DNA of 63,173 nucleotides, counting the filler, from Ministeria vibrans ATCC 50519 (taxonomy: Eukaryota; Protista; Filasterea), in assembly GCA_943704425.1 (NCBI GenBank). It is 11 parts of 11 records of this genome, joined end to end, with 100 filler letters (N's around TTAATTAATTAA, not from the genome) between each part and the next. Parts side by side here need not be neighbours in the genome. Positions count along the whole stretch, not along the records: positions 24,769 to 38,697 come from CALSCP010002697.1; 10 more parts are not named here. The stretch is one strand, 5' to 3'. Below are positions 24,253 through 38,797 of this stretch, piece by piece. The notes below the pieces were generated by a model. That model was not told the DNA's origin. It saw only the letters and a program-made list of their open reading frames with translations, and ran no database searches. How positions within the stretch are numbered: the first letter of the stretch is position 1; every line of letters starts with the position of its first letter. The translations under genes were made by a program, and so were the position numbers.

Positions 24253-24916
24253 AAGGGAAGGAAGAAAAAAGAATGATCAGACAGATCAGTACGTCCGACG
24301 AGAACCAACAGTCAACACCGTTAATTCCTGGACGTGCGGCCGTTTCCGCTTGTCGTTCCGATCACTCACTAAATAGGCTTGTCTGGCTTTGTTCTACATT
24401 TAGACGTTACATTGGGGATGCGCATGGATAGATTCAGGACTCATACTGTCACAAATTGGAGTTCATCGTGAGTTAATCCGAGGTTGATCATCCTCAATAT
24501 TTCTCATTCTTTTATTCACCCATGGCCACTCATACCACTTCCAATACCCTCAACAGGGCTGAGCTGGACTCCTTCAGCGACACATGGCGCAAGCTGTTCG
24601 AACGTACCGCACACACACACACACACACACATACATACATACACATACATACACAATCGCACCAAAAANNNNNNNNNNNNNNNNNNNNNNNNNNNNNNNN
24701 NNNNNNNNNNNNTTAATTAATTAANNNNNNNNNNNNNNNNNNNNNNNNNNNNNNNNNNNNNNNNNNNNTGTATCTGACCAACTCTTTCATTTACTCATAT
24801 CAAGTGAGGCGTGTTCGAGACAGAATAAAGATAGTTAAGTAAACTTTTCCGACGCAGCGAAGCGTAGTTATCTCAATATAAATTGTTTCCCTTGTACTGT
24901 AGACCAATAGACGTGC

Positions 24917-27900
24917 TTAGACAATACTTAAAGACCCGCCGGTATCACTGACAAGTGATTCGTGTTCTTGGATCTCCGGGCGCTTTTTTATCCATTTGAC
25001 TTCGGCACCGACCAAGCGAGTTAGTTTTACGATCTCGCCTTCGCGGCGCATCACTATAAGTCGGTCAAACTTCACATTCATCGTATCGAAACGCGAGATG
25101 GAGCTAATGAACAAGGATTTGTCACTGTCTCGAGCAAATTCTCGCAGAGTATTGATAACATCAGCGACGTTAAGGCAATCAAGACCAAGAAAGCACTCGT
25201 CCAGAATCATGACATTGAAAGAGTGTTGTCTTGCGACCTGCAAAAAAGTTGCCATTGCCAGCGATTTTGCCAACTTATACTTGCAAAATTGCCCCGTGCT
25301 TAGAGAACTTATGCTCACGGCATCTCCATTGATAAATAAGAGATCGGAACCAGATCCGTTCTCACGCGGTGCACAGGTGATTTCCGCATTAAAAATTTGA
25401 TCCTCGCGGCCGCGCTCTTTGGGGAACATTTGCCTGAACCACTTCGTCACATATTTTGCCAATAACCGTTGAACTTCCTCGCCTGTCCTTGCGATCGCGC
25501 CTTCAATGGAGCGCTTATATTTGGAAACTGTCAAGTGCGTGCTCCAATCAGAAGCAAAATCTGTAATCGCCTTGCAAATGGGCTCAGAAACAACAGCACG
25601 GATGGCTTCGTCATCCACAAGACCATGAATAAATTCAGCATTAAATTCACGCCCAAGGCCGGCTTCCATTCGTGAAAGCTCGCCTATGTGGTCATGTATC
25701 CTTTGCAAAGCTTCGATTGAGTTGCGATACAGCTCACCTGCTGGCTGATCTCCCGTGTCTTCCGTGTCACGATTAATTGCTTCAATTTTTTCTTGAAGCC
25801 CTCCCAAGGCCCGTTCTTTGTCCGACTTTTCCGTGCGACATTGAGAGACAAACCTTCGACTCTCCGCAATTCTTTCATCAATGTTGGATTTTTCCTGTTC
25901 CAGGGTGCGAAGTTTTCGTTGCAAGTCAGAGAGACTTGCGACAAGCTCTGCACGTTTGCTAACACTTACGCTTTGACCGCAGGTTGGACAAACACGATCG
26001 TCAGAATCACCAATTTCAGAAAAAGGCGCCAAGTCTTCGACCTTCGTCGAAGTAGATTCCAGTTTTGCCGAACAAGACATTAAACGCTTTTGGGAGTTGT
26101 TGATAATGATACCATGCTCTGATATAGAGCTATCAATGTGATCAAGCCTGTTTTGGAGTTTTTTTAGTTGCTGGCGAGTTTTCTGGAGACATGACTCCTG
26201 TTCCTCCTTTGCCTCCACAGCACAGTTCAGTTTATCCAGCTCGCTCTTTAAACCGACCAATTTTTGTTGCGTTCGATGCAGCAAGTCCTGTAGTTTCGCT
26301 TCCATGGTTTTCAATTTTAAGCGTTTTTTTATTCGCTCCAAAGCGTCTCGAGCATTCTTAAGTCCTGTTTGCTCGTCAAGCGATGTGGCAACGCATTTAT
26401 CAAATTCTTCTTGATTCGTAGAGAATCCACCACCTGAAGGTCCAAAAGGCGACCAGACGCAGGTCATACATATAAACCGTTTAATGGCCTGTTGGACTTC
26501 CACTGAGCGCTTCTTATCGATGCGAATACCAAAAACTTCTCGTGCGCAAAGTTTCAAAAGGTACAGATCGGTTCCAGTAGAGCCAGCATCAACAGAGTTT
26601 GAATAATACTTAAATGTAGAGGGTTCGTTGGGATTTTTTTGACGGTCGGCTCTGAATTCAAAGCTCGTCCCATCGTCACACTCCACAAAACCGTTAATAA
26701 TAACTCTAGTCCGTCTGTCAGAGGCGATGACATTCGCTTGTTCTCCAGAGATGTGTCGATCAGTTGCCTCAGCAAAACACCAAAGAAGAGAGCTCACAGT
26801 GAGGGATGTTTTGCCAATGCCATTACTCGCCGCTGAGTTGAGATCAGATCCCACGAAGCAGAGGCCGACATGATTCAAATAATACACAGTCTTCGATGAG
26901 AAAGGGCCGAGCCCTTCCATCTCCAAACTCAAAAACGTAGTTCTCCGATTGGCACTTGTAGTACCTGCACTGCCAGGGTCCACAAGAGCGTTGAGCTTTA
27001 CCATTTCTTCAGGGCCAAAGTGATTTACGTCGTTCGCAGCAATCAAATCAGCAGAAAGATTATCAGAAACGTGGGGAAAGTGATGTGCAATAGCCACGTT
27101 ATTTCCCCCGTTCGAATCTTCAATCCATTTTGCTGTAACACGAGGGTCCTTCAAATGGGAGGTCAACTTAGCCAATTGCACTTGGTCCACATGCACGTCA
27201 GGAGCGTTGGTCCCAAGCAAAATGGAACTCATATGTAGCCAGAAAGGGTTTTCACAAGGCGTCAGGGCGTAAAGTACCAATATAAATCGCTTTCCAATGA
27301 ACTGATCAGAAAACAGCGGTGACCACTGGCCACCATTCTCAAAATCAATCCCATTCCCCGGATCTTCGCCTTCGTGAAGTGTAACGACAACTTCACTTTG
27401 GGCCCGAAGTTCCGAAAGATGAGAAGACCAAGCCCTAGAGACGCAGAGTTTGAGCGCAATGAAAGAAAGAACGCGACAAAACAAGCTTACTCGACACGTT
27501 CGTCTTCATAGTCTTCAGCGGCTCCTGCAAATTGAAACAGCTATTNNNNNNNGTTAGAGACGCAGAGTTTGAGCGCAATGAAAGAAAGAACGCGACAAAA
27601 CAAGCTTACTCGACACGTTCGTCTTCATAGTCTTCAGCGGCTCCTGCAAATTGAAACAGCTATTAGAAATACAAGCAACCAACAACAAACTTATACCTTC
27701 ACCGCTGTTTCCCCAATTACGGTGATACTGGGAAATTCTTTTGATGAGTTGGCTCGGTGGGGGCTTTAGATCGTCGAGGATTTCCAAAAGTGGTTCCATA
27801 CTGTCTTCGCTTAGCTTACCACGCTCTTCCAGTTTATCGGCGGCAGTTTCTCTGGTCCACTGGCCGTCCTTGAATCCAGCACGAACCATAATAATATTAA

Positions 27901-28055
27901 GATCGGATAAATGTAATATGTCTGCTTTGATGGCAGTGTAATCGGAGAGCTGATCGCTCGTAACTGCCGCTTTCCTATTGAAACAACAATGAGATACGGC
28001 TCTTTTCCTATGTGAACAATCACTGAACTCACCGCTTACGGCTACCAGCACTCAT
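24917..28055 (-). CDS. DED-like domain fused to a Rad50/SbcC-family SMC ATPase with zinc hook (4 exons)
   Basis: ATG at 28055. GT-AG introns 27975-28032 and 27644-27696, plus a third (gtaagc...ctctag) joining in frame to the 24917-27484 ORF. Walker A SNGIGKTS, CPTCGQ hook inside coiled coil, signature LSTGQ, Walker B/D-loop MILDECFLGLD. Head ...KLEERGKLSEDSMEPLLEILDDL...LIKRISQY. Confidence 0.8.
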
Positions 28056-29226
28056 GGCAGGCACGACAAAGAAGTTTTCTACGCAAAATAGGTCTCCAAT
28101 GTAAGTCATAGCCAAGCCGAAAATTGTGAAATACAACGGAAACAAACTCGGGGAAAAAAGAAACAAAGTCTCATTATGGAGTTTTCAAGATTCAAAATTC
28201 AAGAACAAGCACAGCAAGGGATAAGTCACGGAACATGTTCGGTGATCAGTGGTTCACGAAAGCTGGTCTTCGCCCGTTCGAATGGAATGCCTTCAACGCT
28301 ATTTCTTAGCCGCCTTCTTAGCCGCCGAGCGGGAGCTGCGACCCCTACCGCCACAAAAACGGCACGCAGAAGAATGCGCCAGCGTTCACAAGTATGGGAA
28401 TATTTGCCGTGGTGACGAGGCCAGGCAAGCTCTGTTTGAAACAAGCATGAAACAAGCACCAAAAGCCAGAGGAAAAAAACGACAGATCCAGAAGCCAAAT
28501 AAGCGAGCTATGCTCACATCGTCAGCCGAATTCCCACTAAACACCGTCCCACAAGGCCACAAACCATATTCTATCAAGCGCAGCAAGGGATAAGCAGCGG
28601 TGGCAAAATGTTCAAGAAAAAAAGCATCAAAGAGCCCAATATTAGCTCTGGCGACTTGAGAATACTTTATAATATCATGCCACCCTCTTATTGGTTCCTC
28701 GCACGCGGTGACTATGATGCGCTGGGCTGTCCTTGGACAGACGAACGATAAAAAAAAACCACACTGAAAATAAGCGAGAATTACCACAGCGGAAAAATAA
28801 GTATCGCTGCGATCATGCCATTAGCACCAGCGCGGCTCCAACCCAGCAAACAACCCCATCCTGCCAGAGAGAGCACGAAAATCGAAGCGGCAGCAGCAAA
28901 GGCTGAAACCACGCGGTCGCAAAAACACGCCAAGATGGGACTCAATCGCCGCTGCACTGAACGCAACACAATGTCACCAATCATGTGCTTAGTGCTTACC
29001 GGTTGTCTTCACGCAAACTTACTTTAATTTTATTTTTTGCGAAGAAAAAAAATCTGAATTGAGAATTCTGATTTCTGAACACAAATATAGTAACTATCGA
29101 AGCGTTGATCAAACCGAATAATCAATGCCCACCGCGCAACAGAATTACAGAAACTAAACAATTTCATTACTGAAGGAGTCGCGTTCATCCAATCAAGAAG
29201 GAATGACTTTCCCATCTCTTCAATTT

Positions 29227-30414
29227 ATGAGCGTCATCGTCGACTGGGCCTCCAACGAGCCGAAAAAATCCGAGAGTCCTCGAGCGCTACAAAGACTACG
29301 ACGTACTCTCTGAGCCCAAAGGGCTACTTGATAAAAAAAAAGGCGATCCACGTCCTCTCCTAACATCTCAGCAAGCCCACAAGGCTATGCTGGAGCACTA
29401 CAAACAGTTGGGTGACATCGGGCGCGACCGCTTTTACTACTTCCTGGCCGACAAGTATGCGGCTATCTCACAGCAGCAGGTGCAGCAGTTCCTCAACAAC
29501 CAAGAGCTCCACCAGCTCGTCCTACCTGTGCGAAATAAAAAAAAGTCAGTAGTGCCATTGTCACCGAGGCGCCCATGAAGCGGTGGCAGGCCGACCTGGT
29601 CGATGTGACCAAATGGAAGAGCCCACAGAATCGACACTCAACATTCTTACTTACCATTGTCGACACCTTCTCCAAATACGCCTGGGTCATGCCTTTGACC
29701 AGCAAGCACAGCGTCACGGTAGCAACTGCCTTTGCCAAGGTGTTCACGGAGGCAGGTGTGCCCGAGGAGCTACAGACAGACAGACCGTGGAAGTGAGTTC
29801 TTCACCGACGTGGACGACCTGGTCTGGCTAGTCGTTATGGCTCGTGAGATGTTGGTGTGTTGTAGTACGATAATGAAGTATTCTCTGAGGTTCGTTTCAA
29901 AAAAAAAAAAAAGACCTGCTCGCCAAACACAACATCAAGCATGTTCGCAGTCACGCCTACAGTCCATAAACAAATAGTCAGATAGAACGATCCAATGGAA
30001 CACTCAAACGTATGTTGAACGCTCAAATGTTGGCGCACAGCACTTGCTCATATGTGGATGACTTACCACGTCTGCTGAAAGAATACAATTCAATCAAGCA
30101 CACCACCATTGGTGCTGCCCCAGTCAAAATTCACACCACGTCGTCAAGTACACAAACCAAACAGGTCAACGACCGTCTGGAGAAGCGCGCCATCAAGTAA
30201 ACAGGCAAGTTCAAGCGCTCTTACCCACCCGTGGGAGTTGGCGACTGTGTTCGTCACAAAACCGCTCGAGAAGCCTGCTGAACGATGGTCTCGCAACCTC
30301 CATCAGGTCAAAAAGATCATCGACGGTGACAAAGCCTGGCAAGGACCACGCTATGTGCTCGACGGCGGTCAAGTTGTGAAGAGAGATCGCAAAAGATTGA
30401 CAAAGAAAAACTGA
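29227..30414 (+). pseudogene. Polinton/Ginger-type retroviral-like (rve) integrase, decayed
   Basis: GRDRFY...ISQQQVQQFL..QELHQ; RWQADLVD; LTIVDTFSKYAW; LQTDRGSEF; QIERSNGTLK (D-D-E triad). Frameshifts in A-runs and a CAGA duplication, an internal stop, and an insertion. Confidence 0.88.
29822..29912 (+). mobile_element. 91-bp poly(A)-tailed retroposon (SINE-like or 5'-truncated LINE end) with 6-bp TSD GACCTG
   Basis: GACCTG at 29816-29821 and 29913-29918 flanks the insert, which ends in A14; excision restores ...DVDDLLAKHNIKHVRSHAY. Confidence 0.75.
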
Positions 30415-30830
30415 TCAAAATTGTTGCACCTCTTCGTCCAAAATGTTCACCAACACAAAGCTTGATTGGTTCAACAATCAACAGGTTTGATCAGCCTGGT
30501 AGATTCGACAGATTTGGCCAGTTTGACCAATTTAGATTTGGCAGACGCGACCAACCCCAGACTCACTGCCTCAACGCAGCCTACTGGGTACGACATTTCC
30601 TCTGCCGTTGCGAAGATGTTACACAGTGCTGCCCGTGCTGTCTGGGCTGCCCTGGGGCTGCTTGGTTCATATCAATTTGTAATATCTTGTATATACAGTC
30701 TGTTGGTCTCATGTTTTCTAAATATAAATGTACAATTACAAACGACACCCCACGGCAGATGAGTGAGTTGACAACTCGCCAACACGCACAACATGCATTG
30801 CCCTATAGTAAGGGGGGAATAATGGATTTT

Positions 30831-31340
30831 TCAGTTCGGGCGACGATTTCGAAACTAGTGTATTCAAGATTGCACACTGTTGTGGATTCCACCACAGATT
30901 TGCACAATCACAAGCTTAAGCAATTGCAAGATAATTTCAAAAAATTACCTTATTTTAGAAATCGCTACATTTTTGACGTTTTTTGCGGGTTTATTTCTAA
31001 ATCTCTGTGTTTTAAAAAGAATATGTTTGTGGATTCCACAGATTTGCACAATCACAAAATAATTTCAAATGTTAGAGATTTAGAAATTACGTTATTTTAG
31101 AAATCGCTACATTTTTGACCTTTTTTGCCGGTTTCTTTCTAAATATCTGTGTTTTAAAACAAGATAATTTCAAATGTTAGAGATTTAGAAATTACGTTAT
31201 TTTAGAAATTACGTTATTTTTGAAATCGCTACATTTTTGACGTTTTTTTTGACGGCTTCTTTCTAAATCTCTGTGTTTTAGAAATTACGTTATTTTAGAA
31301 ATCGCTACATTTTTGACGTTTTTTTGACGTTTTCTTTCTA
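30831..31340. repeat. Nested AT-rich direct-repeat block
   Basis: GAAATCGCTACATTTTTGAC four times; CACAGATTTGCACAATCACAA twice; ATAATTTCAAATGTTAGAGATTTAGAAATTACG twice. Confidence 0.85.
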
Positions 31341-31522
31341 GTGTAGCTGTATATGCCTTAGTCGTCACTCGTCAGTAGACGAGTGATAGCCATATGGGCA
31401 GAGAGAGAGAGCGCGGCTGTCGCGCGGGCGATGCGGATCGACCGCGACAATATCATGTACTCCGTACTTGCCCTGCTGCCTCGATAGTTATTGTTCTGTA
31501 ACCAGAGAACCCGCTTCTATTT

Positions 31523-31714
31523 CTAATTCTCACTCGCATTTACGTAGACTTCCAGATTTCTGAGGTGGACAGACGTCACAAAGTGTTTTGAAACATTTCC
31601 CTTTGATATGTTTTTCTTGCAATATTGACAGTATTCTTTCATTTTCAATGTTTCAATCATCCTCCCTTTGTTCTTAGCATAATACTCCTTGTAATAATCG
31701 TTTCTATCACTCAT
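31523..31714 (-). CDS. Small C2H2/C2HC zinc-finger protein of the kind found in PLVs and large DNA viruses
   Basis: YYKEYYAKNK...CQYCKKNISKGNVSKHFVTSVH; lies 26 bp downstream of the pol gene. Confidence 0.65.
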   Translation of the reverse strand: MSDRNDYYKEYYAKNKGRMIETLKMKEYCQYCKKNISKGNVSKHFVTSVHLRNLEVYVNASEN

Positions 31715-31740
31715 AATAATGAAAAGTACGAGTCATATGT

Positions 31741-33594
31741 TTAAGTCGCAAACTTGACTGAGTTTGCATTCAACACAACACAAACTCCCTCATTCTTGAC
31801 CTTTAGTTCCCCGATACCCTTCCCTGTTGTGACACTATCATCGGATCCAGTTATGACAAGTCCGTCTGTGTGAAAAGCAACCACTCGGTCACCATATTTT
31901 CGACACAACCCGCTCAGTCTTGTTCTACCAAATGCAGTCACAAACGGACCCACTCTCGCATAATCCGTCACAAATCCCGCATTTTGTTTTATTAATTTGA
32001 CATAATGGTGATCTTCACCGATCGGTTGAATCTGTTGAATCTCGTATCCCTTGCAATCGACCGGACCACCGACAGTGTTCTTCCATATTGTTGATTTCTC
32101 ACACAGAACACCCCAGATCAGACTCCCCAGTTTCTTAGCCACTTTTGTCTTTGATCTCAAGTCAAAACAGTAGTCCACAGTCGGTTTGAACAGTAGATGA
32201 CCGGTTATTAAACAAGATTTCTCGTAAACGAGAGCATTCATCTGAGAATCCTGTATCAGCTCAACTCCCAGTTCCATCCTCCGTGCACAGTTGATATCGA
32301 TGTGAGTGTACCTATTCTGTTTATTGAACATAAAGAACCGGTCCCTCGGCTGCCCTGATGGTGTTATGATGCAACGGTAGATACCATATTTCAGGATGTC
32401 AGGTATGTGGTCCAGATGATTGAATGTTCCTCGTTTAACAGGAAATTTTCTCATAGCACTCCTCATAATGTCTCCATAATAATAATTGAAGTCATAATCT
32501 GTTGCATGACCATATGTCCCCTTTGTACATCCTATCAGTCCACACCTCTTCGTATCCAGTAGCCACCTTGCTTCATCCTGTTGTATTTTATCGGGTTGGA
32601 TAACAGATCGTGTCTTGTTGTGGAATATCCATTTGATCATGTTCTTGAGATTTCCAGATTTGTGCAGATCCAGTATCGGATCAGCCTCCTTCAGCTCATG
32701 GGCCACGAGTTTCCACTCAGCATATGACTGTTTCAGATCACTGCCGCCCTGCATCAAAAAGATGCGCGAACTCTTAACCAATTTTTGAAATTCCTTGATC
32801 GTACACTCGAACTGTTTCATTCCATCAAACAGCTGAAATGCATCACCCTTGTTGATCTTTTTGAAGAAGATAATCTTGGACTTTCGAGAATGATAATCCT
32901 TCGTCAGTTGATCATTTTTGTTGCTCTCAAGACTGTAATGGCTGTCTTCCAGTTTCAGGGTGATCTGGCGCTGATGTTCCGCTTTCGACTGATATATATG
33001 ATCTCCAATAACGTTTATGGTGATGCTTCCGCGTTCCTCGATCTTAGGAATGAGAGAAATGGGTACTCGATTTTTACGCGCCAACTTCAACCACTTTTTC
33101 ATGCGTGGTGCTGCGGATAGCGGTCCTGGCATGTACTCGGTGCTGATATATGCATTGCGGAGACAGTACCATAGACAATCGTTGTACGACTGATCGTCAC
33201 CACCCGAGACACCGTTCTTTGCATAATATATCTGGAACTCGTGTATCTTATCTGTGTCTGCAAAGTTGTCGGGCACCTCGTAATGGTCATGCACACTGTA
33301 AAGTGATGGTTCCTGGCCGAGCAGAGTCCAACGGCCCGATCGCCATCCGTGAGACTCATGAGTACTCACTTCTACCTCTCCAGTGCCGCTATTCACCGTC
33401 TTCTGATGTTTGGTTGTCACTTGTCGGCAGAGATCGCCGCGGGTCCCCAGTTCCTTATTCTCGTACTGTTCCACGATCTGCTTGACCTGCTCACGGGTCC
33501 ATCCCTTGTCGGATTGGAAGCTTGCCTGGACAATTTTTGCTCCATGGGATACAATATCTGTTGTTTTGATGCTGGTGGGTGCTGGTGTCTCCAT
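31741..33594 (-). CDS. Divergent protein-primed-type family B DNA polymerase
   Basis: Motif A DYDFNYYY...FP; motif B KKLGSLIWG; ARVGPFVTAFGR; motif C variant FHTDG; GKGIGELK. Confidence 0.75.
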   Translation of the reverse strand: METPAPTSIKTTDIVSHGAKIVQASFQSDKGWTREQVKQIVEQYENKELGTRGDLCRQVTTKHQKTVNSGTGEVEVSTHESHGWRSGRWTLLGQEPSLYSVHDHYEVPDNFADTDKIHEFQIYYAKNGVSGGDDQSYNDCLWYCLRNAYISTEYMPGPLSAAPRMKKWLKLARKNRVPISLIPKIEERGSITINVIGDHIYQSKAEHQRQITLKLEDSHYSLESNKNDQLTKDYHSRKSKIIFFKKINKGDAFQLFDGMKQFECTIKEFQKLVKSSRIFLMQGGSDLKQSYAEWKLVAHELKEADPILDLHKSGNLKNMIKWIFHNKTRSVIQPDKIQQDEARWLLDTKRCGLIGCTKGTYGHATDYDFNYYYGDIMRSAMRKFPVKRGTFNHLDHIPDILKYGIYRCIITPSGQPRDRFFMFNKQNRYTHIDINCARRMELGVELIQDSQMNALVYEKSCLITGHLLFKPTVDYCFDLRSKTKVAKKLGSLIWGVLCEKSTIWKNTVGGPVDCKGYEIQQIQPIGEDHHYVKLIKQNAGFVTDYARVGPFVTAFGRTRLSGLCRKYGDRVVAFHTDGLVITGSDDSVTTGKGIGELKVKNEGVCVVLNANSVKFAT

Positions 33595-33692
33595 GTTTTA
33601 CTACTTGGGAGACGTTCTTTGTTTTTAAGTACTTTTTTCCCCTGAAAACTACTTAAACATAGCTCACATTGAAACAGTATAATTATAAACAA

Positions 33693-35288
33693 ATGGCAAA
33701 TCTCAACGAAAACACCGCACAAGCCTTCAAGAAATACGTTAACTACTCAAATGACCGTAATCTTGCCCTCCTCTTCACTGAAATCACTTCTTATTCATTC
33801 AAGTGTGTTGATTTGGAAAAATTACGTTTCCTCCTATTCAACACCGAGTCATGCATCTGGAGACCGACAGCCGGTGAAGAACTACGCATTTTTGTGCAGG
33901 ATGAGTTCATAGAATGGGCCGACAATCTCGATCTCAAGGATGTCAATGGAACGGTAAACAAAATGGAGCAGAAAGCAGTCGATAAACTGATTAACAGTGT
34001 CAGCAGCACAACTTCTGCATGTACATTGATCAAAAATCTAGCTGTCAGACACCAGGTTGTCTATGAGGAAGTGTTCGACTGGAATTGTGACACACTACAG
34101 TTCAAGAATGGCTGTCTCGAGCTCAAAACTGGAGCATTCCGGAAGAGAATCAGAGAGGATTATGTGACAGCAGTGATGGACTATAATTACAACGCAGAAG
34201 TTGATGCAATGGTTGAGGGAGATCTGGAAACTTTGATTAAGCACATTGCCAATGATGATGATAATATCATGGGATGGATTATGTCCTCTCTTGCATATAT
34301 GTGCACGGGCAGAACAGAGTTGCAGCAGTTCTTTAATTTTTATGGTCCTCAAGCCGGAAATGGAAAGACAACTCTGTTCGACATGTTATCAGCTGCCTTC
34401 CCTATCCATGTTGTCAAATTTGGCAAGGAGACGTTTAACAAGGGATATGGGCAATTCAAAAAGCAGATGGCCCGAGTTGGGCCGCTCACACGATGCACAA
34501 TTATCGAAGAACCAGACGAGGCAGTGATGGACATGGGAATGATCAAAGATGTGACAAGTGGTGGCTGCATCATTGTTGAAGTCATGTATGGGAACACTCG
34601 ATCAATCACCATCAGATTCAAAATGACATTTATTACGAACCACTTGTTGAAATTCCCCTACTGCAACGGCGGAAAGAGACGCGGAGAGGGAAATGAATTC
34701 TTGAACAAATTTGTCCATTCGTCGAAATTGGCATCAACCAAGAAGTCTTACAAGGATGGCAACGTGTACGCTGCTGATCTAAATATCAAGAATAAATTCC
34801 ATGATGTACGATATAAGAATGCTCTGATCAAATTGCTCCTTCCCTGGTTCAAATTCTTTTATGAAAACCATGCTCTTTACAACCAAGAGAAGCACCAGAA
34901 GGTCTGGGAGGATAGTGCAGAGGTAAACAATGTCTTCGGTACATTTTTGGAAGACATTTTTGTTCAAACCGACGATGAGACTGACAAACTCGGAAAATCC
35001 GAGATGATGGAGATGTACAGGACCTACCACAAATGCAAGATATCGGATGCCAAGTTCTTTAGCTACCTGAAGCAAAATAGTCTCAAGTATGCCAAGGATA
35101 CTCGGGTGAATGGACACAAAGGCGCGATTCTGGGACTGAGAGTGAGAACTGATGAAGAGAACGAGATTGAGGAGTTTGGTCAGTACAAGGATGAGATCCG
35201 CAAACTACAGAAAAGAATAACAGAACTGGAAAGCCAGATTGAAAACGGTGATGGTAGTGAACTTGCTGATTTGATTGATGAATTGTAA
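33693..35288 (+). CDS. D5-like superfamily-3 helicase (D5_N plus SF3 P-loop)
   Basis: FKNGCLELKTGAFR (D5_N); Walker A FYGPQAGNGKTT; Walker B TIIEE; IKDVTSG; motif C FITN. Confidence 0.88.
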   Translation: MANLNENTAQAFKKYVNYSNDRNLALLFTEITSYSFKCVDLEKLRFLLFNTESCIWRPTAGEELRIFVQDEFIEWADNLDLKDVNGTVNKMEQKAVDKLINSVSSTTSACTLIKNLAVRHQVVYEEVFDWNCDTLQFKNGCLELKTGAFRKRIREDYVTAVMDYNYNAEVDAMVEGDLETLIKHIANDDDNIMGWIMSSLAYMCTGRTELQQFFNFYGPQAGNGKTTLFDMLSAAFPIHVVKFGKETFNKGYGQFKKQMARVGPLTRCTIIEEPDEAVMDMGMIKDVTSGGCIIVEVMYGNTRSITIRFKMTFITNHLLKFPYCNGGKRRGEGNEFLNKFVHSSKLASTKKSYKDGNVYAADLNIKNKFHDVRYKNALIKLLLPWFKFFYENHALYNQEKHQKVWEDSAEVNNVFGTFLEDIFVQTDDETDKLGKSEMMEMYRTYHKCKISDAKFFSYLKQNSLKYAKDTRVNGHKGAILGLRVRTDEENEIEEFGQYKDEIRKLQKRITELESQIENGDGSELADLIDEL

Positions 35289-36212
35289 ATTCTGATGACC
35301 ATTTTGAAATGAGCGCCAGATGCTCCGAAAATTGCTTGCAAGCAATTGCTTGTCATTGATTTGATTACTTACTCATAAATAGTTATTGTTAGGCTTTCTC
35401 TAACATCAATGGTGCGTGTCAGGTACAACTATATCAGGCACCTTTGTTGGCGTTCTCATTCTGTTAATGGTTCTCTTTTCGGAGTTTTCATTTGCTTGTT
35501 TTCGTTTCCGATGTTTGGCTGGGGTGGGGGGGCGGTGGGCCTGCTGATGCTGATGGAAGGAAAATAATCTCTTTTTGACTATTCCAATCCCGCTTATAAT
35601 CTCTTTTTGACTATTCCAATCCCGCTTGTTTCTCTAAAAGCAATTTGTTCTTCTTTCTTTCTTTCTTATTCCTTTCCTTCTTTGATGATGCTACATTATT
35701 GATTCTCTCCACTTCTCTGTTTATTTGCTTGCACTTGGAACTTGGTTTTGTTACCCAGTACGCTTTCTTAGTCTCAGTTTTTACTCTTGTTTAAATGGAA
35801 GATACACTATTCTGTTGAGCTGAATGAAAAAATAATTATTATGATGAGTATTATTATTCTTATTATTATTCTTATTATTATTATTATTGAGTTATGGTAG
35901 TTATTCTGATAACCGTTTGTGATCATCTCGCACCAGGAAGGGTCACCTTCTCGAACCATTAGCCGTTGTCTTCATCGGTGAACTTGTTCATGTCGTCCCA
36001 TTCCTTTGTAGACCCGAAGTCTCCGTACATTTTTTTTTACCGGTATGATTTGATCATTCTCTTCATCTCTTGATTTCACTTTTATTTGGCGTTTTCTTGA
36101 AGTAAGTTGTTGTTTTCACTAGTTCTGGGTTGTATGGGTATGTTGGCGACCATGGGACGCGGTTTTGGGGCTTTTGTTGGACTTTCTCTTGGCGGCGAAC
36201 ATTTTGCTACCG

Positions 36213-36478
36213 TTGCTTGTCGCGGTCTGCCGTGTTTGCTCAGTTGGTGTAGTGCGGTTATAGGGTACCGCTGGTGCAAACGGCGATGTCTGAGAGGGTT
36301 GGAATTTTGCGTGGCGTTCTCGCTTATTCTTTTTATTTTTCCTTTTTTTGTTTTACGCTCGTCTCAAAGCAACAATTGCTTGTCGCGGTCTATCGTGTTG
36401 TATAGGTGGTATAGTGCGGTTATGGGGTACGGCTGGGGCAAACGGCGATGGGTGAGAGGGTTTGGATTTTGCTTGGCG
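36213..36478. repeat. Imperfect ~105-bp direct repeat, 2 copies
   Basis: TTGCTTGTCGCGGTCT...TAGTGCGGTTAT.GGGTAC.GCTGG.GCAAACGGCGATG..TGAGAGGGTT at about 36213 and 36375. Confidence 0.75.
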
Positions 36479-36682
36479 GGCGTTCTCGCTTGTTTCCGTT
36501 TTCGTGTTGGTGGGGGGGTTATCATGCTGCGAGTGTGCAGTGGGATGTCGATTTTGCACGCGGCGCTACATTTGGAGATTGTAAATTAGCATTGTGCATT
36601 GTTAGGTGAAATTTGCTGAATAGATTTATTCTTTGTTTGCGCAGGGAACCTTTCTTTAGCCTCAACCAGCTCTTGTTTCAAC

Positions 36683-37957
36683 ATGAGCCAGGAGATTAAA
36701 GAAGAGGACATTCCAAAGTCTTTTGGTGTAGTCCAGCGGAAAATCTCAGGAGACTCGGGGCAAGGTGAATGTTTTATCATCGAGAATGCAAACCTCGGGC
36801 GTTTTCTTATGAAGGTTTTTAAGGAAACAAACGTGGATCGTTCCACTGAAGCAAGTCAAAGATTTGACAGGGAGGTGAATATTTTAAAATCATGCACTCA
36901 GTGCGACATAGATGGTGTTCCGAAATATATTGACAGTGGAAACTTCGAGTGTTCTAAGGGTGTCATGAATTATATTGTTATGGAGTATGTGAGTAACTCG
37001 AAGAGCCTCGACAAGTATCTGGACGGGTTTAAAAAAGGACTTCCTTCTATTGGCGAGGTATTTGCATTTTTCTCTCGTTTGATGGGTATCTTAAAGGACT
37101 GCCACACACTTGGCATTATTCATCGCGATATCAAGCCAAGAAATATTGTGCTGGCTGACAAGATACTAACTCGACCTTTCCTCGTGGACTTTGGTATTTC
37201 TTTTACGGACGACGATAAATCCATCACGGATACTCAAGGGGAACCATTTAATGCATTCTTCGAACTCCCTGAATTGAAGAATTTTTCTGCGAGACAACTT
37301 AGGGCAGATGATATAAGTATTCTTAAGCGGCATCCAACCATCGACACCACGCAAGCTTGCGGCGTCTTACTCCATGTTTTATTTGGTACTCCACGTGGGC
37401 TCAGCTGTGATAATTTTTTGTTAAACGAGAAAGTGCAAAAAGGTCTAAGGACGTATGAAGGGAATTATCCAGACATGAAACGATTCTTCGTCAAGGCTCT
37501 TAATTCTGACAAGGCGGCTCGATTTCAATCAGTGGATGATTTGGAGTATGCTTTCAAATCCATGACAAGTAACATTGGCGTTACTATGGAGGCGCTGCAG
37601 CGTCGCATTGGCGCTCTTGAATTCAACGAACCTCCTTCACCCGGCACGTCTACCGATCAGACTTGGTTGTCTCTAAAGCCATTGCTAGAGCTTTCCTTTT
37701 CTGTTGCAAAGTTTAAGAAGGAGAGAAAGTGGTTGATGGCAAAAGAGGGAAGGCAATGTAATTTGAGTTACGCGACTGACTCAAGTTTTATCGAGATTGA
37801 ATTCTCTGTTCGCGTGGAGGGCAGACTTTGCTATTTATTGATGAAGGTCGGAGGGAAAGGCGATGAACATTTTTTTAATTTGGACCCATTGCCATCGGAA
37901 AATGATGTTGCATTCGGACTCCTGCATCAATTGGAACGCTGTCTTAAAAAAAACTGA
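36683..37957 (+). CDS. Ser/Thr protein kinase, intronless CDS, bacterial-like
   Basis: GDSGQG loop; LMK lysine; RFDRE alphaC; VMEYV; HRDIKPRN; DFG; LPE; ARFQSVDDL. Confidence 0.88.
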   Translation: MSQEIKEEDIPKSFGVVQRKISGDSGQGECFIIENANLGRFLMKVFKETNVDRSTEASQRFDREVNILKSCTQCDIDGVPKYIDSGNFECSKGVMNYIVMEYVSNSKSLDKYLDGFKKGLPSIGEVFAFFSRLMGILKDCHTLGIIHRDIKPRNIVLADKILTRPFLVDFGISFTDDDKSITDTQGEPFNAFFELPELKNFSARQLRADDISILKRHPTIDTTQACGVLLHVLFGTPRGLSCDNFLLNEKVQKGLRTYEGNYPDMKRFFVKALNSDKAARFQSVDDLEYAFKSMTSNIGVTMEALQRRIGALEFNEPPSPGTSTDQTWLSLKPLLELSFSVAKFKKERKWLMAKEGRQCNLSYATDSSFIEIEFSVRVEGRLCYLLMKVGGKGDEHFFNLDPLPSENDVAFGLLHQLERCLKKN

Positions 37958-38797
37958 TTAATCTTAAGGTGAATTGAAAACCCGAATATTAATAAAGAAT
38001 TGAAATACAAACAACCAACTTAATAAATACAATATCAAATGCAGAATTGAAACCCCGAATATTAATGAAGATTATTAAAGGGTTAACTCTTGTTGAAAAG
38101 TACAAAACAATTGAGGTTCAAAAACGTAAGCTCAGTGTGTGGACGATCGTTTCGGTTTTCTACTTTGCTTTCTGATACTTTTCTCTGCTACTTAAAAGTT
38201 TTATTCTGGCGCTCTCGACGCTGATTTCGCAAAACATCTCTCAAATTTTGAGTTTTTAACGTTTTTACCGATGTTCGTATCCTGGGAAACTTTTCTCAAA
38301 TCGGTGCCAACGGCGTCAGAGCGTCACTGCTTCACTTTTTCACGGCGCCCCTTTTTTGCTGTGCCATTCTCTTCTTCAGGCCCTGCTTATCCCTTGTTCT
38401 TCTCGTTCCCAGGGCCTTTCTTATCTACTTAATCTTATTATGGACTGTTTATTTCTCTTCAAAAGAGTAGAACAATAATGAAGACAATTAGACAAATAAT
38501 AATAAACAAACTATATATGAAACTGAACTGCAAACTGAACTGAAAACTGAACTGGCAAACAGTCCGATCGAAATTTCCTTCCTCAAGGAATTTGAAGATA
38601 CACAATTCTGTTGAGCATGAATGAAAATATTAAAATGAAAATCGAAGATTGAATTTTTAGTATTTGAAATGAAAAATTCACACACATACCACACACCNNN
38701 NNNNNNNNNNNNNNNNNNNNNNNNNNNNNNNNNNNNNNNNNTTAATTAATTAANNNNNNNNNNNNNNNNNNNNNNNNNNNNNNNNNNNNNNNNNNNN

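Follow-up and report, generated by a model that had tools for sequence, protein, structure and literature searches.

A spliced gene of Ministeria vibrans for a variant zinc-hook Rad50/SbcC-type ATPase with a putative role in DNA sensing

DNA sensors resembling the structural maintenance of chromosomes (SMC) proteins, such as Lamassu, Wadjet, Smc5/6 and Rad50, are increasingly recognised as immune devices of both bacteria and humans, and to our knowledge no dedicated sensor family derived from Rad50 or SbcC has been described in protists. In the case of Lamassu, the LmuB protein has its origin in SbcCD and acts as a sensor of DNA ends (PMC12663957), and fusions of Mre11 with Rad50 are exemplified by Mimivirus R555 (Yoshida et al. 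2011, PMC3175470). Here we describe a gene from the filasterean Ministeria vibrans ATCC 50519 (assembly GCA_943704425.1), contained in a window of 63,173 nucleotides (nt), that is, the whole stretch of DNA analysed, which joins 11 parts of 11 records of this genome with 100 filler letters between each part and the next. The gene occupies the minus strand of the piece at 24769-38697 (CALSCP010002697.1), with an 855-codon open reading frame (ORF) at 24917-27484, and codes for a non-canonical zinc-hook ATP-binding cassette (ABC) ATPase of the Rad50/SbcC type, to which a helical N-terminal domain is joined by splicing. A first-pass annotation of the sequence had proposed a death effector domain (DED) fused to a Lamassu-like sensor of linear DNA; the ATPase and the splicing are upheld by what follows and the DED is not, and a putative role in sensing foreign or broken DNA is the reading that we favour.

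The gene is genuine, nuclear, spliced and expressed, and comprises four exons. RNA contigs from two different studies (runs X1, from 2011, and X2, from 2025), mapped to 24769-30500, skip three minus-strand GT..AG introns whose ends were read from the sequence; all three are retained in the DNA contigs of run X7, and since these show none of the joints, the joints are the product of splicing. The 23 coding nt of exon 1, the 278 nt of exon 2, the 34 nt of exon 3 and base 27434 add up to 112 codons in frame with the large ORF, which together with the 838 codons of exon 4 give a predicted product of about 950 amino acids (aa). Canonical introns joining ATG 28055 in frame to the helical exon, and this one to the large ORF, had been foreseen in the first-pass annotation, and the RNA contigs of both studies bear the prediction out, which also removes the earlier worry that the N-terminal exon might not be spliced to the ATPase. 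The 5′ leader (within 28056-28801, minus strand) measures at least 500 nt and carries eight upstream ATGs, seven of them out of frame or short; the eighth, at 28109, shares the frame of the main start, with no stop between them, and could add 18 aa. ATG 28055 is favoured as the start because the homologue from Salpingoeca rosetta (see below) begins with MSSAKRS. At the other end of the gene, a high-copy repeat (24769-24883) with several continuations at 24882-24883 lies directly past the 3′ untranslated region (UTR), where the DNA depth is about 1700 versus 105. In the marine metatranscriptome X6, a 205-nt contig is identical to a part of exon 4 (26474-26678), which places transcription of the organism, or at the least of this gene, in the sea.

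All the motifs previously read in the ORF (Walker A, coiled coil, CPTC hook, LSTGQ and LDE..LD) were located in exon 4 (Table 1). Homology searches and folding, here and below, were done with single exons. Walker A, Walker B (hhhhDE), D-loop and signature motifs are placed on a split ABC head, and the antiparallel coiled coil carries a CxxC zinc hook at its apex; wherever a row of alignment A3 extends over the hook region, it has the CxxC. An AlphaFold2 model of exon 4 built with 30 sequences has both head lobes at a predicted local distance difference test (pLDDT) score of about 90 and a helical hairpin going up through residues 341-472 and down through 491-669, with the hook at the tip and the CPTC between helices 374-472 and 491-559. 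The coiled-coil arms are short in this model, about 130 and 180 aa, and the first ~160 residues of the exon have a pLDDT below 50. The head fold is nearest to that of SbcC/Rad50, and the family profile matched the Rad50 hook chains 6zff and 1l8d. The best profile match of the query is phrog_77, ‘SbcC-like subunit’ (E 1.9e-22), followed by PADLOC LmuB PDLC03859 (E 4.9e-17), NCBIfam Rad50 (E 1.5e-7) and Pfam SbcC_Walker_B (E 0.008), all Pfam and NCBIfam scores for Rad50/SbcC being far under their cut-offs. The Q-loop Gln and the H-loop His are replaced by WSPFG and SSIS, respectively; the missing His had been noticed before (LFISSISRFD), and to it the Gln has now to be added. As had also been remarked, phosphoesterase motifs of SbcD/Mre11 are not visible: no Metallophos or Mre11 match was obtained in the scanned ORFs of the 13.9-kb piece. 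The region preceding the head gave no Pfam match at E up to 10 and no similarity to the N-terminal parts of two Mre11 fusions (P0019 and P0024, see below), so its reading as a decayed Mre11 domain finds no support; for aa 1-150 of exon 4 nothing similar was found, the Mre11 parts of the fusions included.

Table 1. Coordinates, along the whole window, of the gene and of the features around it
Feature	Position	Strand	Description and basis
Exon 1	28033..28571	-	Leader, ATG 28055 and 23 coding nt (MSAGSRKR, resembling a nuclear localisation signal, NLS); X1 RNA contig record 2 spans 28571..28032
Intron 1	28032..27975	-	58 nt, GTGAGT..AG; absent from X1/X2 RNA contigs, present in X7 DNA
Exon 2	27974..27697	-	278 nt; helical N-terminal domain of ~92 aa (‘DED-like’ exon); RNA contigs
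Intron 2	27696..27644	-	53 nt, GTATAAGT..AG; RNA contigs, ends from sequence
Exon 3 (micro-exon)	27643..27610	-	34 nt; acidic linker AAEDYEDERV; RNA joints at both sides
Intron 3	27609..27435	-	GTAAGC..AG; 175 nt as in the window, 56 nt after collapsing the duplicate
Exon 4	24917..27434	-	838 codons and stop (24917-24919); poorly conserved region of ~160 aa, then N-head, zinc-hook coiled coil and C-head
3′ UTR	24769..24916	-	RNA contigs extend to 24771 or past; enters the high-copy repeat (24769-24877)
Walker A, SNGIGKTS	26827-26804	-	Sequence and alignment A3
Q-loop position, WSPFG, without Gln	26441..26455	-	Alignment A3; W-x-P/R here throughout the family
CxxC zinc hook, CPTCGQ	25990-25973	-	Coiled-coil apex; exon-4 aa 482-485 (CPTC)
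ABC signature, LSTGQ	25303-25289	-	Sequence and alignment A3
Walker B (VMILDE) and D-loop (CFLGLD), VMILDECFLGLD	25213-25178	-	Sequence and alignment A3
H-loop position, LFISSISRFD, without His	25114-25085	-	Alignment A3
Exact 110-nt duplicate	27436-27545 = 27555-27664		Flanks the 7-N gap 27546-27552; assembly branch point
Protein-primed DNA polymerase B, 617 aa	31741-33594	-	Atlas score 0.97 to DNA_pol_B_2 clusters
D5-like primase-helicase	33669-35288	+	Divergent to the polymerase; D5_N, DUF5906, phrog DNA primase 2e-30
Ser/Thr kinase	36683-37957	+	

An exhaustive HMMER search against 1.84 billion representative proteins returned 32 matches in total, none of them below 1e-30 and none a eukaryotic Rad50. 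The best one is PTSG_07399 of S. rosetta, with 31% identity, and about 15 of the 32 form a family with the query, with members from S. rosetta, Choanoeca flexa, Stephanoeca diplocostata (two fragments) and environmental, eukaryote-like contigs of ENA, JGI and Logan. Most of the remaining matches are proteins of about 600 aa, and the three that were looked up are on T4-like phage contigs; another two are Mre11-SbcC fusions, P0019 and P0024, the latter from Mesostigma. The contig of P0019 also codes for proteins with PCNA, ankyrin and patatin domains, and is taken to be giant-virus-like. A word-indexed homologue search with the ATPase and a single-protein metagenome scan gave no match, and what a profile search retrieved was limited to phage-like and SbcC proteins. 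In a tree built from the head regions of the family, the two fusions and phage proteins, the eight full-length family rows are monophyletic (100/99), the query falls together with S. rosetta and C. flexa (95/90), and the family plus the two fusions are split from the 13 phage rows (97/93). A canonical Rad50 would have about 1300 aa, long arms and a place among cellular Rad50 sequences; here the arms are of ~130-180 aa and the nearest relatives are non-canonical, in line with the earlier suggestion that this is not the housekeeping Rad50. The family keeps the Walker A, Walker B (DE), D-loop, signature and CxxC hook, and in all of it the sequence is W-[ST]-P or W-x-R at the Q-loop Gln and SS[IV]S-like at the H-loop His, two residues that the phage SbcC-like proteins and the Mre11 fusions retain (alignment A3). 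No nuclease domain is present in the family, and several members start with basic, NLS-like N-termini. The proposal that the nuclease had been replaced is a fair reading as far as a swap of N-terminal sequence goes, since the nearest complete relatives carry Mre11 N-terminal to the ATPase, just where the family has other sequence; the identity of the newcomer as a death fold was not supported. Altogether, this is a tiny and unstudied family, known mainly in choanoflagellates, and no mention of PTSG_07399 was found in the literature searched.

A hint at the role of these proteins comes from the genes encoded next to the homologues, which are of conflict type at all three environmental loci with readable flanks. 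P0008 (L005) is placed between two patatin genes matching phospholipase effectors of the cyclic-oligonucleotide-based antiphage signalling system (CBASS) type (1e-34), with a NACHT gene two genes upstream and a NACHT-ankyrin-ubiquitin gene downstream; P0026 (L006 and L007) is accompanied by GmrSD-like (HEC-06, 4e-34) and PNP_UDP_1 (PDC-M60C, 1e-31) genes and by a GT4-conflict glycosyltransferase; and P0006 (L008) adjoins a gene with a sub-threshold TIR_2 match (1.2e-4). These contigs look like those of a compact eukaryote or a giant virus: their GC content is ~50%, Shine-Dalgarno motifs are missing, the start contexts are rich in A and the spacers are very short. As a side observation, the P0008 contig, which bears the two patatin genes and another NACHT gene as well, encodes at L005:16831-20307 (minus strand) a NACHT-ankyrin protein of 1158 aa that ends in a ubiquitin domain (ubiquitin 2.8e-22, NACHT 2.2e-21). 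An N-terminal PNP_UDP fusion in P0008 itself was considered and found no support.

Such neighbourhoods speak, circumstantially, for a role as a sensor or in immunity, and a putative function in conflict or immunity, in which the protein would sense foreign or broken DNA, is to our judgement the most likely biology of the gene, with a probability of roughly 0.55. Two chains would pair through the zinc hook, and ATP binding would close the heads around DNA, probably at its ends as in SbcC/Rad50. Because the Q-loop Gln and the H-loop His are lost, hydrolysis is expected to be slow, and the protein would serve less as a processing motor than as a DNA clamp or switch gated by ATP. Its output would run through the lineage-specific N-terminal region, made of an NLS, the helical domain of ~90 aa common with S. 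rosetta and the acidic linker, which would occupy the position of the nuclease in the sister fusions. From the Lamassu-like sensor of linear DNA that had been proposed for this locus, we thus retain the sensor or immune part, on the circumstantial grounds of the NACHT, patatin, TIR-like, GmrSD and PNP_UDP genes beside the homologues, and drop the kinship with LmuB, given that SbcC-like profiles and structures score higher. A bolder version, which we put forward only tentatively and regard as unlikely at present, would see here a eukaryotic Lamassu-type counterpart in the closest relatives of animals, where a slow, nuclease-less, zinc-hook SbcC-like ATPase detects, within the nucleus, the ends of foreign or broken DNA and signals through exchangeable N-modules.

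Several observations weigh against a role in immunity. The three environmental contigs on which it is founded come without a background rate for such neighbours, an immune cluster is not evident at the S. rosetta locus (a leucine-rich-repeat kinase is nearby), and the query gene itself is flanked by a possible transposon remnant and a Polinton-like element instead of immune genes. Pfam, Atlas, AlphaFold and Foldseek revealed no effector or adaptor fold in the N-terminal region, and the head-region tree held no canonical eukaryotic Rad50 or LmuB sequences. Moreover, the loss of the Q-loop and H-loop residues fits equally well a purely structural tether. The likeliest alternative is that of ordinary genome maintenance, under which the gene would have come from a virus and would code for a divergent second Rad50/SbcC-like DNA tether or repair ATPase that plays no part in immunity. 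The SbcC/Rad50 head fold with its zinc hook, the NLS-like N-terminus and the kinship with phage recombination ATPases and Mre11-Rad50 fusions, which are known scattered among eukaryotes (PMC3175470), are all compatible with it; however, a repair ATPase sits poorly with the absence of the nuclease domain and the family-wide loss of both catalytic residues, as it does with the patchy and very rare occurrence of the family, its fast-evolving N-terminal regions and the conflict-type neighbours at three of three environmental loci with flanks. On this balance we hold a maintenance role to be doubtful, and keep DNA sensing as the preferred reading.

A further explanation takes the N-terminal exon as a true DED and the ATPase as a DNA-end sensor recruiting caspase-like or death-fold partners. 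The N-terminal module of the query is indeed helical and of ~90 aa, its LEERGKLSEDSMEPLLEILDDL stretch resembles helices 4-5 of the DED, and DED (PF01335) was the sole Pfam family matching exon 2 (E 1.2e-3). However, the match reached only 19.5 bits (18.3 on the longer ORF) against a cut-off of 35.9, and was restricted to positions 45-81 of the 82 in the profile, corresponding to the last three helices, so the gathering cut-off over the whole domain was not attained. DEDs conserve an RxDL motif in helix 6, where exon 2 has DDLKPPPSQLIKRI, with KPPPSQL in the place of RxDL. No DED chain was matched by phmmer with exon 2 against all PDB sequences, nor any solved DED chain by a two-sequence profile of exon 2 and the S. 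rosetta N-domain. The first-pass annotation had anticipated a six-helix death fold; the AlphaFold2 model of exon 2, computed without an alignment and unreliable (pLDDT 54.6), has four helices, and a Foldseek search of the PDB with this low-confidence model gave no match at E up to 0.001 and listed no death fold. Homologues of exon 2 were not found within the searchable length band, an Atlas search gave low recognition and unrelated clusters, and BLASTP against S. rosetta no match. By Smith-Waterman alignment, exon 2 is homologous to the first 127 residues of PTSG_07399 (score of 70 versus 34.8 ± 6.3 for shuffled sequences, with 0 of 2000 reaching it), and the other N-termini tested showed no such similarity. 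This homology, and the equal layout of the S. rosetta gene (N-domain exon, 23-codon exon and body), indicate that the fusion of N-domain and ATPase is conserved. The DED-like signature is not kept in the orthologue, with LETRCPPNSNANLPYLCEES at that stretch of the alignment and no Pfam match for the S. rosetta N-domain at E up to 10. Splicing of exons 1-3 to a second body (see below), as a shared adaptor module might do, and the immune look of the homologue contexts would suit a DED; nevertheless, chance matches at this level are expected among many windows and the finding was selected for this very pattern, so we regard the match as unproven and probably fortuitous and a true DED as improbable. 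The N-module could still be a very divergent death-fold adaptor. Its reading as HEAT repeats was also considered and rejected, since designed alphaRep chains match residues 32-68 with insignificant single repeats (i-Evalue ≥32) and no Pfam HEAT match, a resemblance at the level of motifs. Nothing here overturns the view of death domains as an innovation of animals (PMC6792448).

The assembly around the micro-exon deserves a separate description. Each copy of the 110-nt duplicate reaches from the last part of intron 2 across the micro-exon into the first part of intron 3, the second copy of the micro-exon (27491-27524) being identical; beyond the duplicate the first copy continues with AC and the second with GG, and loose ends of DNA and RNA contigs occur at 27553 and 27608. 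In the X7 DNA, a contig of depth 214 (27555-29501) forks into the ATPase arm (24850-27465, depth 105) and another arm (depth 117), the sequence of which lies outside the window, and the DNA depth of exons 1-3 is consequently twice that of the ATPase arm. The micro-exon is joined in both X1 and X2 RNA either to exon 4 or to an exon of the other arm (joint at 27608-27609), which continues in frame as EFSSQLIGGPM. Since the duplicate flanks the gap and the micro-exon joins both arms, a single micro-exon suffices and the real intron 3 is of 56 nt. Two bodies share exons 1-3, and the two versions would be either alleles or recently duplicated paralogues; a 30-mer of the alternative exon had no match in the window or in a further scan for it, and the second body was not recovered. 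That the same N-module (exons 1-3) is wired to two C-terminal bodies as in polymorphic immune receptor loci is a conceivable, if speculative, component of the eukaryotic Lamassu-type proposal. The earlier suspicion of a misassembly at the N gap was correct in that the gap falls on a branch point with a duplicate, and fails in that RNA contigs join the micro-exon to exon 4. A misassembly that brings in an ATPase foreign to the gene, or an ATPase that is cargo of the adjacent Polinton-like element, could appeal to the branch point, to the twofold difference in DNA depth between its sides and to the protein-primed polymerase B, D5-like primase-helicase and kinase located 4-10 kb upstream, but is highly improbable in view of the RNA joints to exon 4, a DNA contig (contig 13) spanning from exon 4 into the shared intron, the spliceosomal introns of the gene, the presence of the stretch in four studies and the same layout in S. 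rosetta with no such element nearby, on which the cargo reading is rejected.

Upstream of the gene, the region 30400-38697 has a lower GC content (41% vs 47%) and resembles an integrated Polinton-like or polinton-like-virus element, with the polymerase, primase-helicase and kinase listed in Table 1. An array of 65-76-nt direct repeats (30912-31357), spaced 76-142 nt from start to start, is found at the edge of this low-GC element and may be the terminal repeat region of the element. Inside the element there are also a direct repeat with a spacing of 162 nt (36206-36478), within an ORF at 36107-36589, and a perfect 32-nt tandem duplication (35564-35627). Between the gene and the element, a second spliced transcript runs through 29408-30367 on the minus strand, with GT..AG introns of ~129 and ~110 nt and a poly(A) after 29408; no exon frame of it holds a long ORF, and it overlaps short plus-strand ORFs that are, by eye only, possible transposon remnants.

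The interest of the family lies in the combination of nuclease loss and two lost catalytic loops with NACHT, patatin, TIR-like, GmrSD and PNP_UDP neighbours of its homologues. S. rosetta is genetically tractable, which makes the idea of a virus-derived Rad50-like clamp acting as a DNA sensor in the relatives of animals directly testable. At the same time, a tempting but unsupported DED claim is removed from this gene.

Compared with E. coli SbcC and with archaeal and eukaryotic Rad50, the CxxC-hook SMC-like ABC ATPases, the query has much shorter arms, lacks the Q-loop Gln and the H-loop His, bears an N-terminal extension of ~275 aa and has no Mre11/SbcD partner or domain detected in its 13.9-kb piece. 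With R555-type fusions the family shares the grouping of its heads with P0019 and P0024 (97/93), the additional sequence ahead of the head and a scattered occurrence among marine eukaryotes; it differs from them in that no N-terminal calcineurin-like phosphoesterase domain is detectable in the query, and in that the fusions keep the Gln and His residues that the query family has lost. The T4 gp46-like SbcC-like ATPases of phages (phrog_77) have an ATPase body of similar size, a short coiled coil and a CPTC hook, but are found in phage recombination modules, keep all the catalytic loops and have no N-terminal extension. As for LmuB, it is an ATPase that likewise has short arms and derives from SbcC, and it is believed to sense DNA ends and to act together with effectors that are separate or swappable (PMC12663957). 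The PADLOC LmuB model matches the query and 10 of 15 family members; it is not specific, because phage SbcC-like proteins score better with it (1e-19 to 1e-30), and these same proteins reach 1e-69 to 1e-91 with phrog_77. The first solved LmuB chain appears at Foldseek rank 33, outside the top 50 by Z and below SbcC, Rad50 and SMC heads; LmuA and LmuC genes are absent from the 13.9-kb piece, where the logic of an operon is inapplicable to a spliced eukaryotic gene. Membership in LmuB is therefore rejected, the query matching phrog_77 better than LmuB (1.9e-22 against 4.9e-17) and the solved LmuB chains ranking lower. What is new here is a variant CxxC SMC-like ATPase, for which a demonstrable place within LmuB is not reached and which, by analogy, may work like the LmuB of Lamassu.

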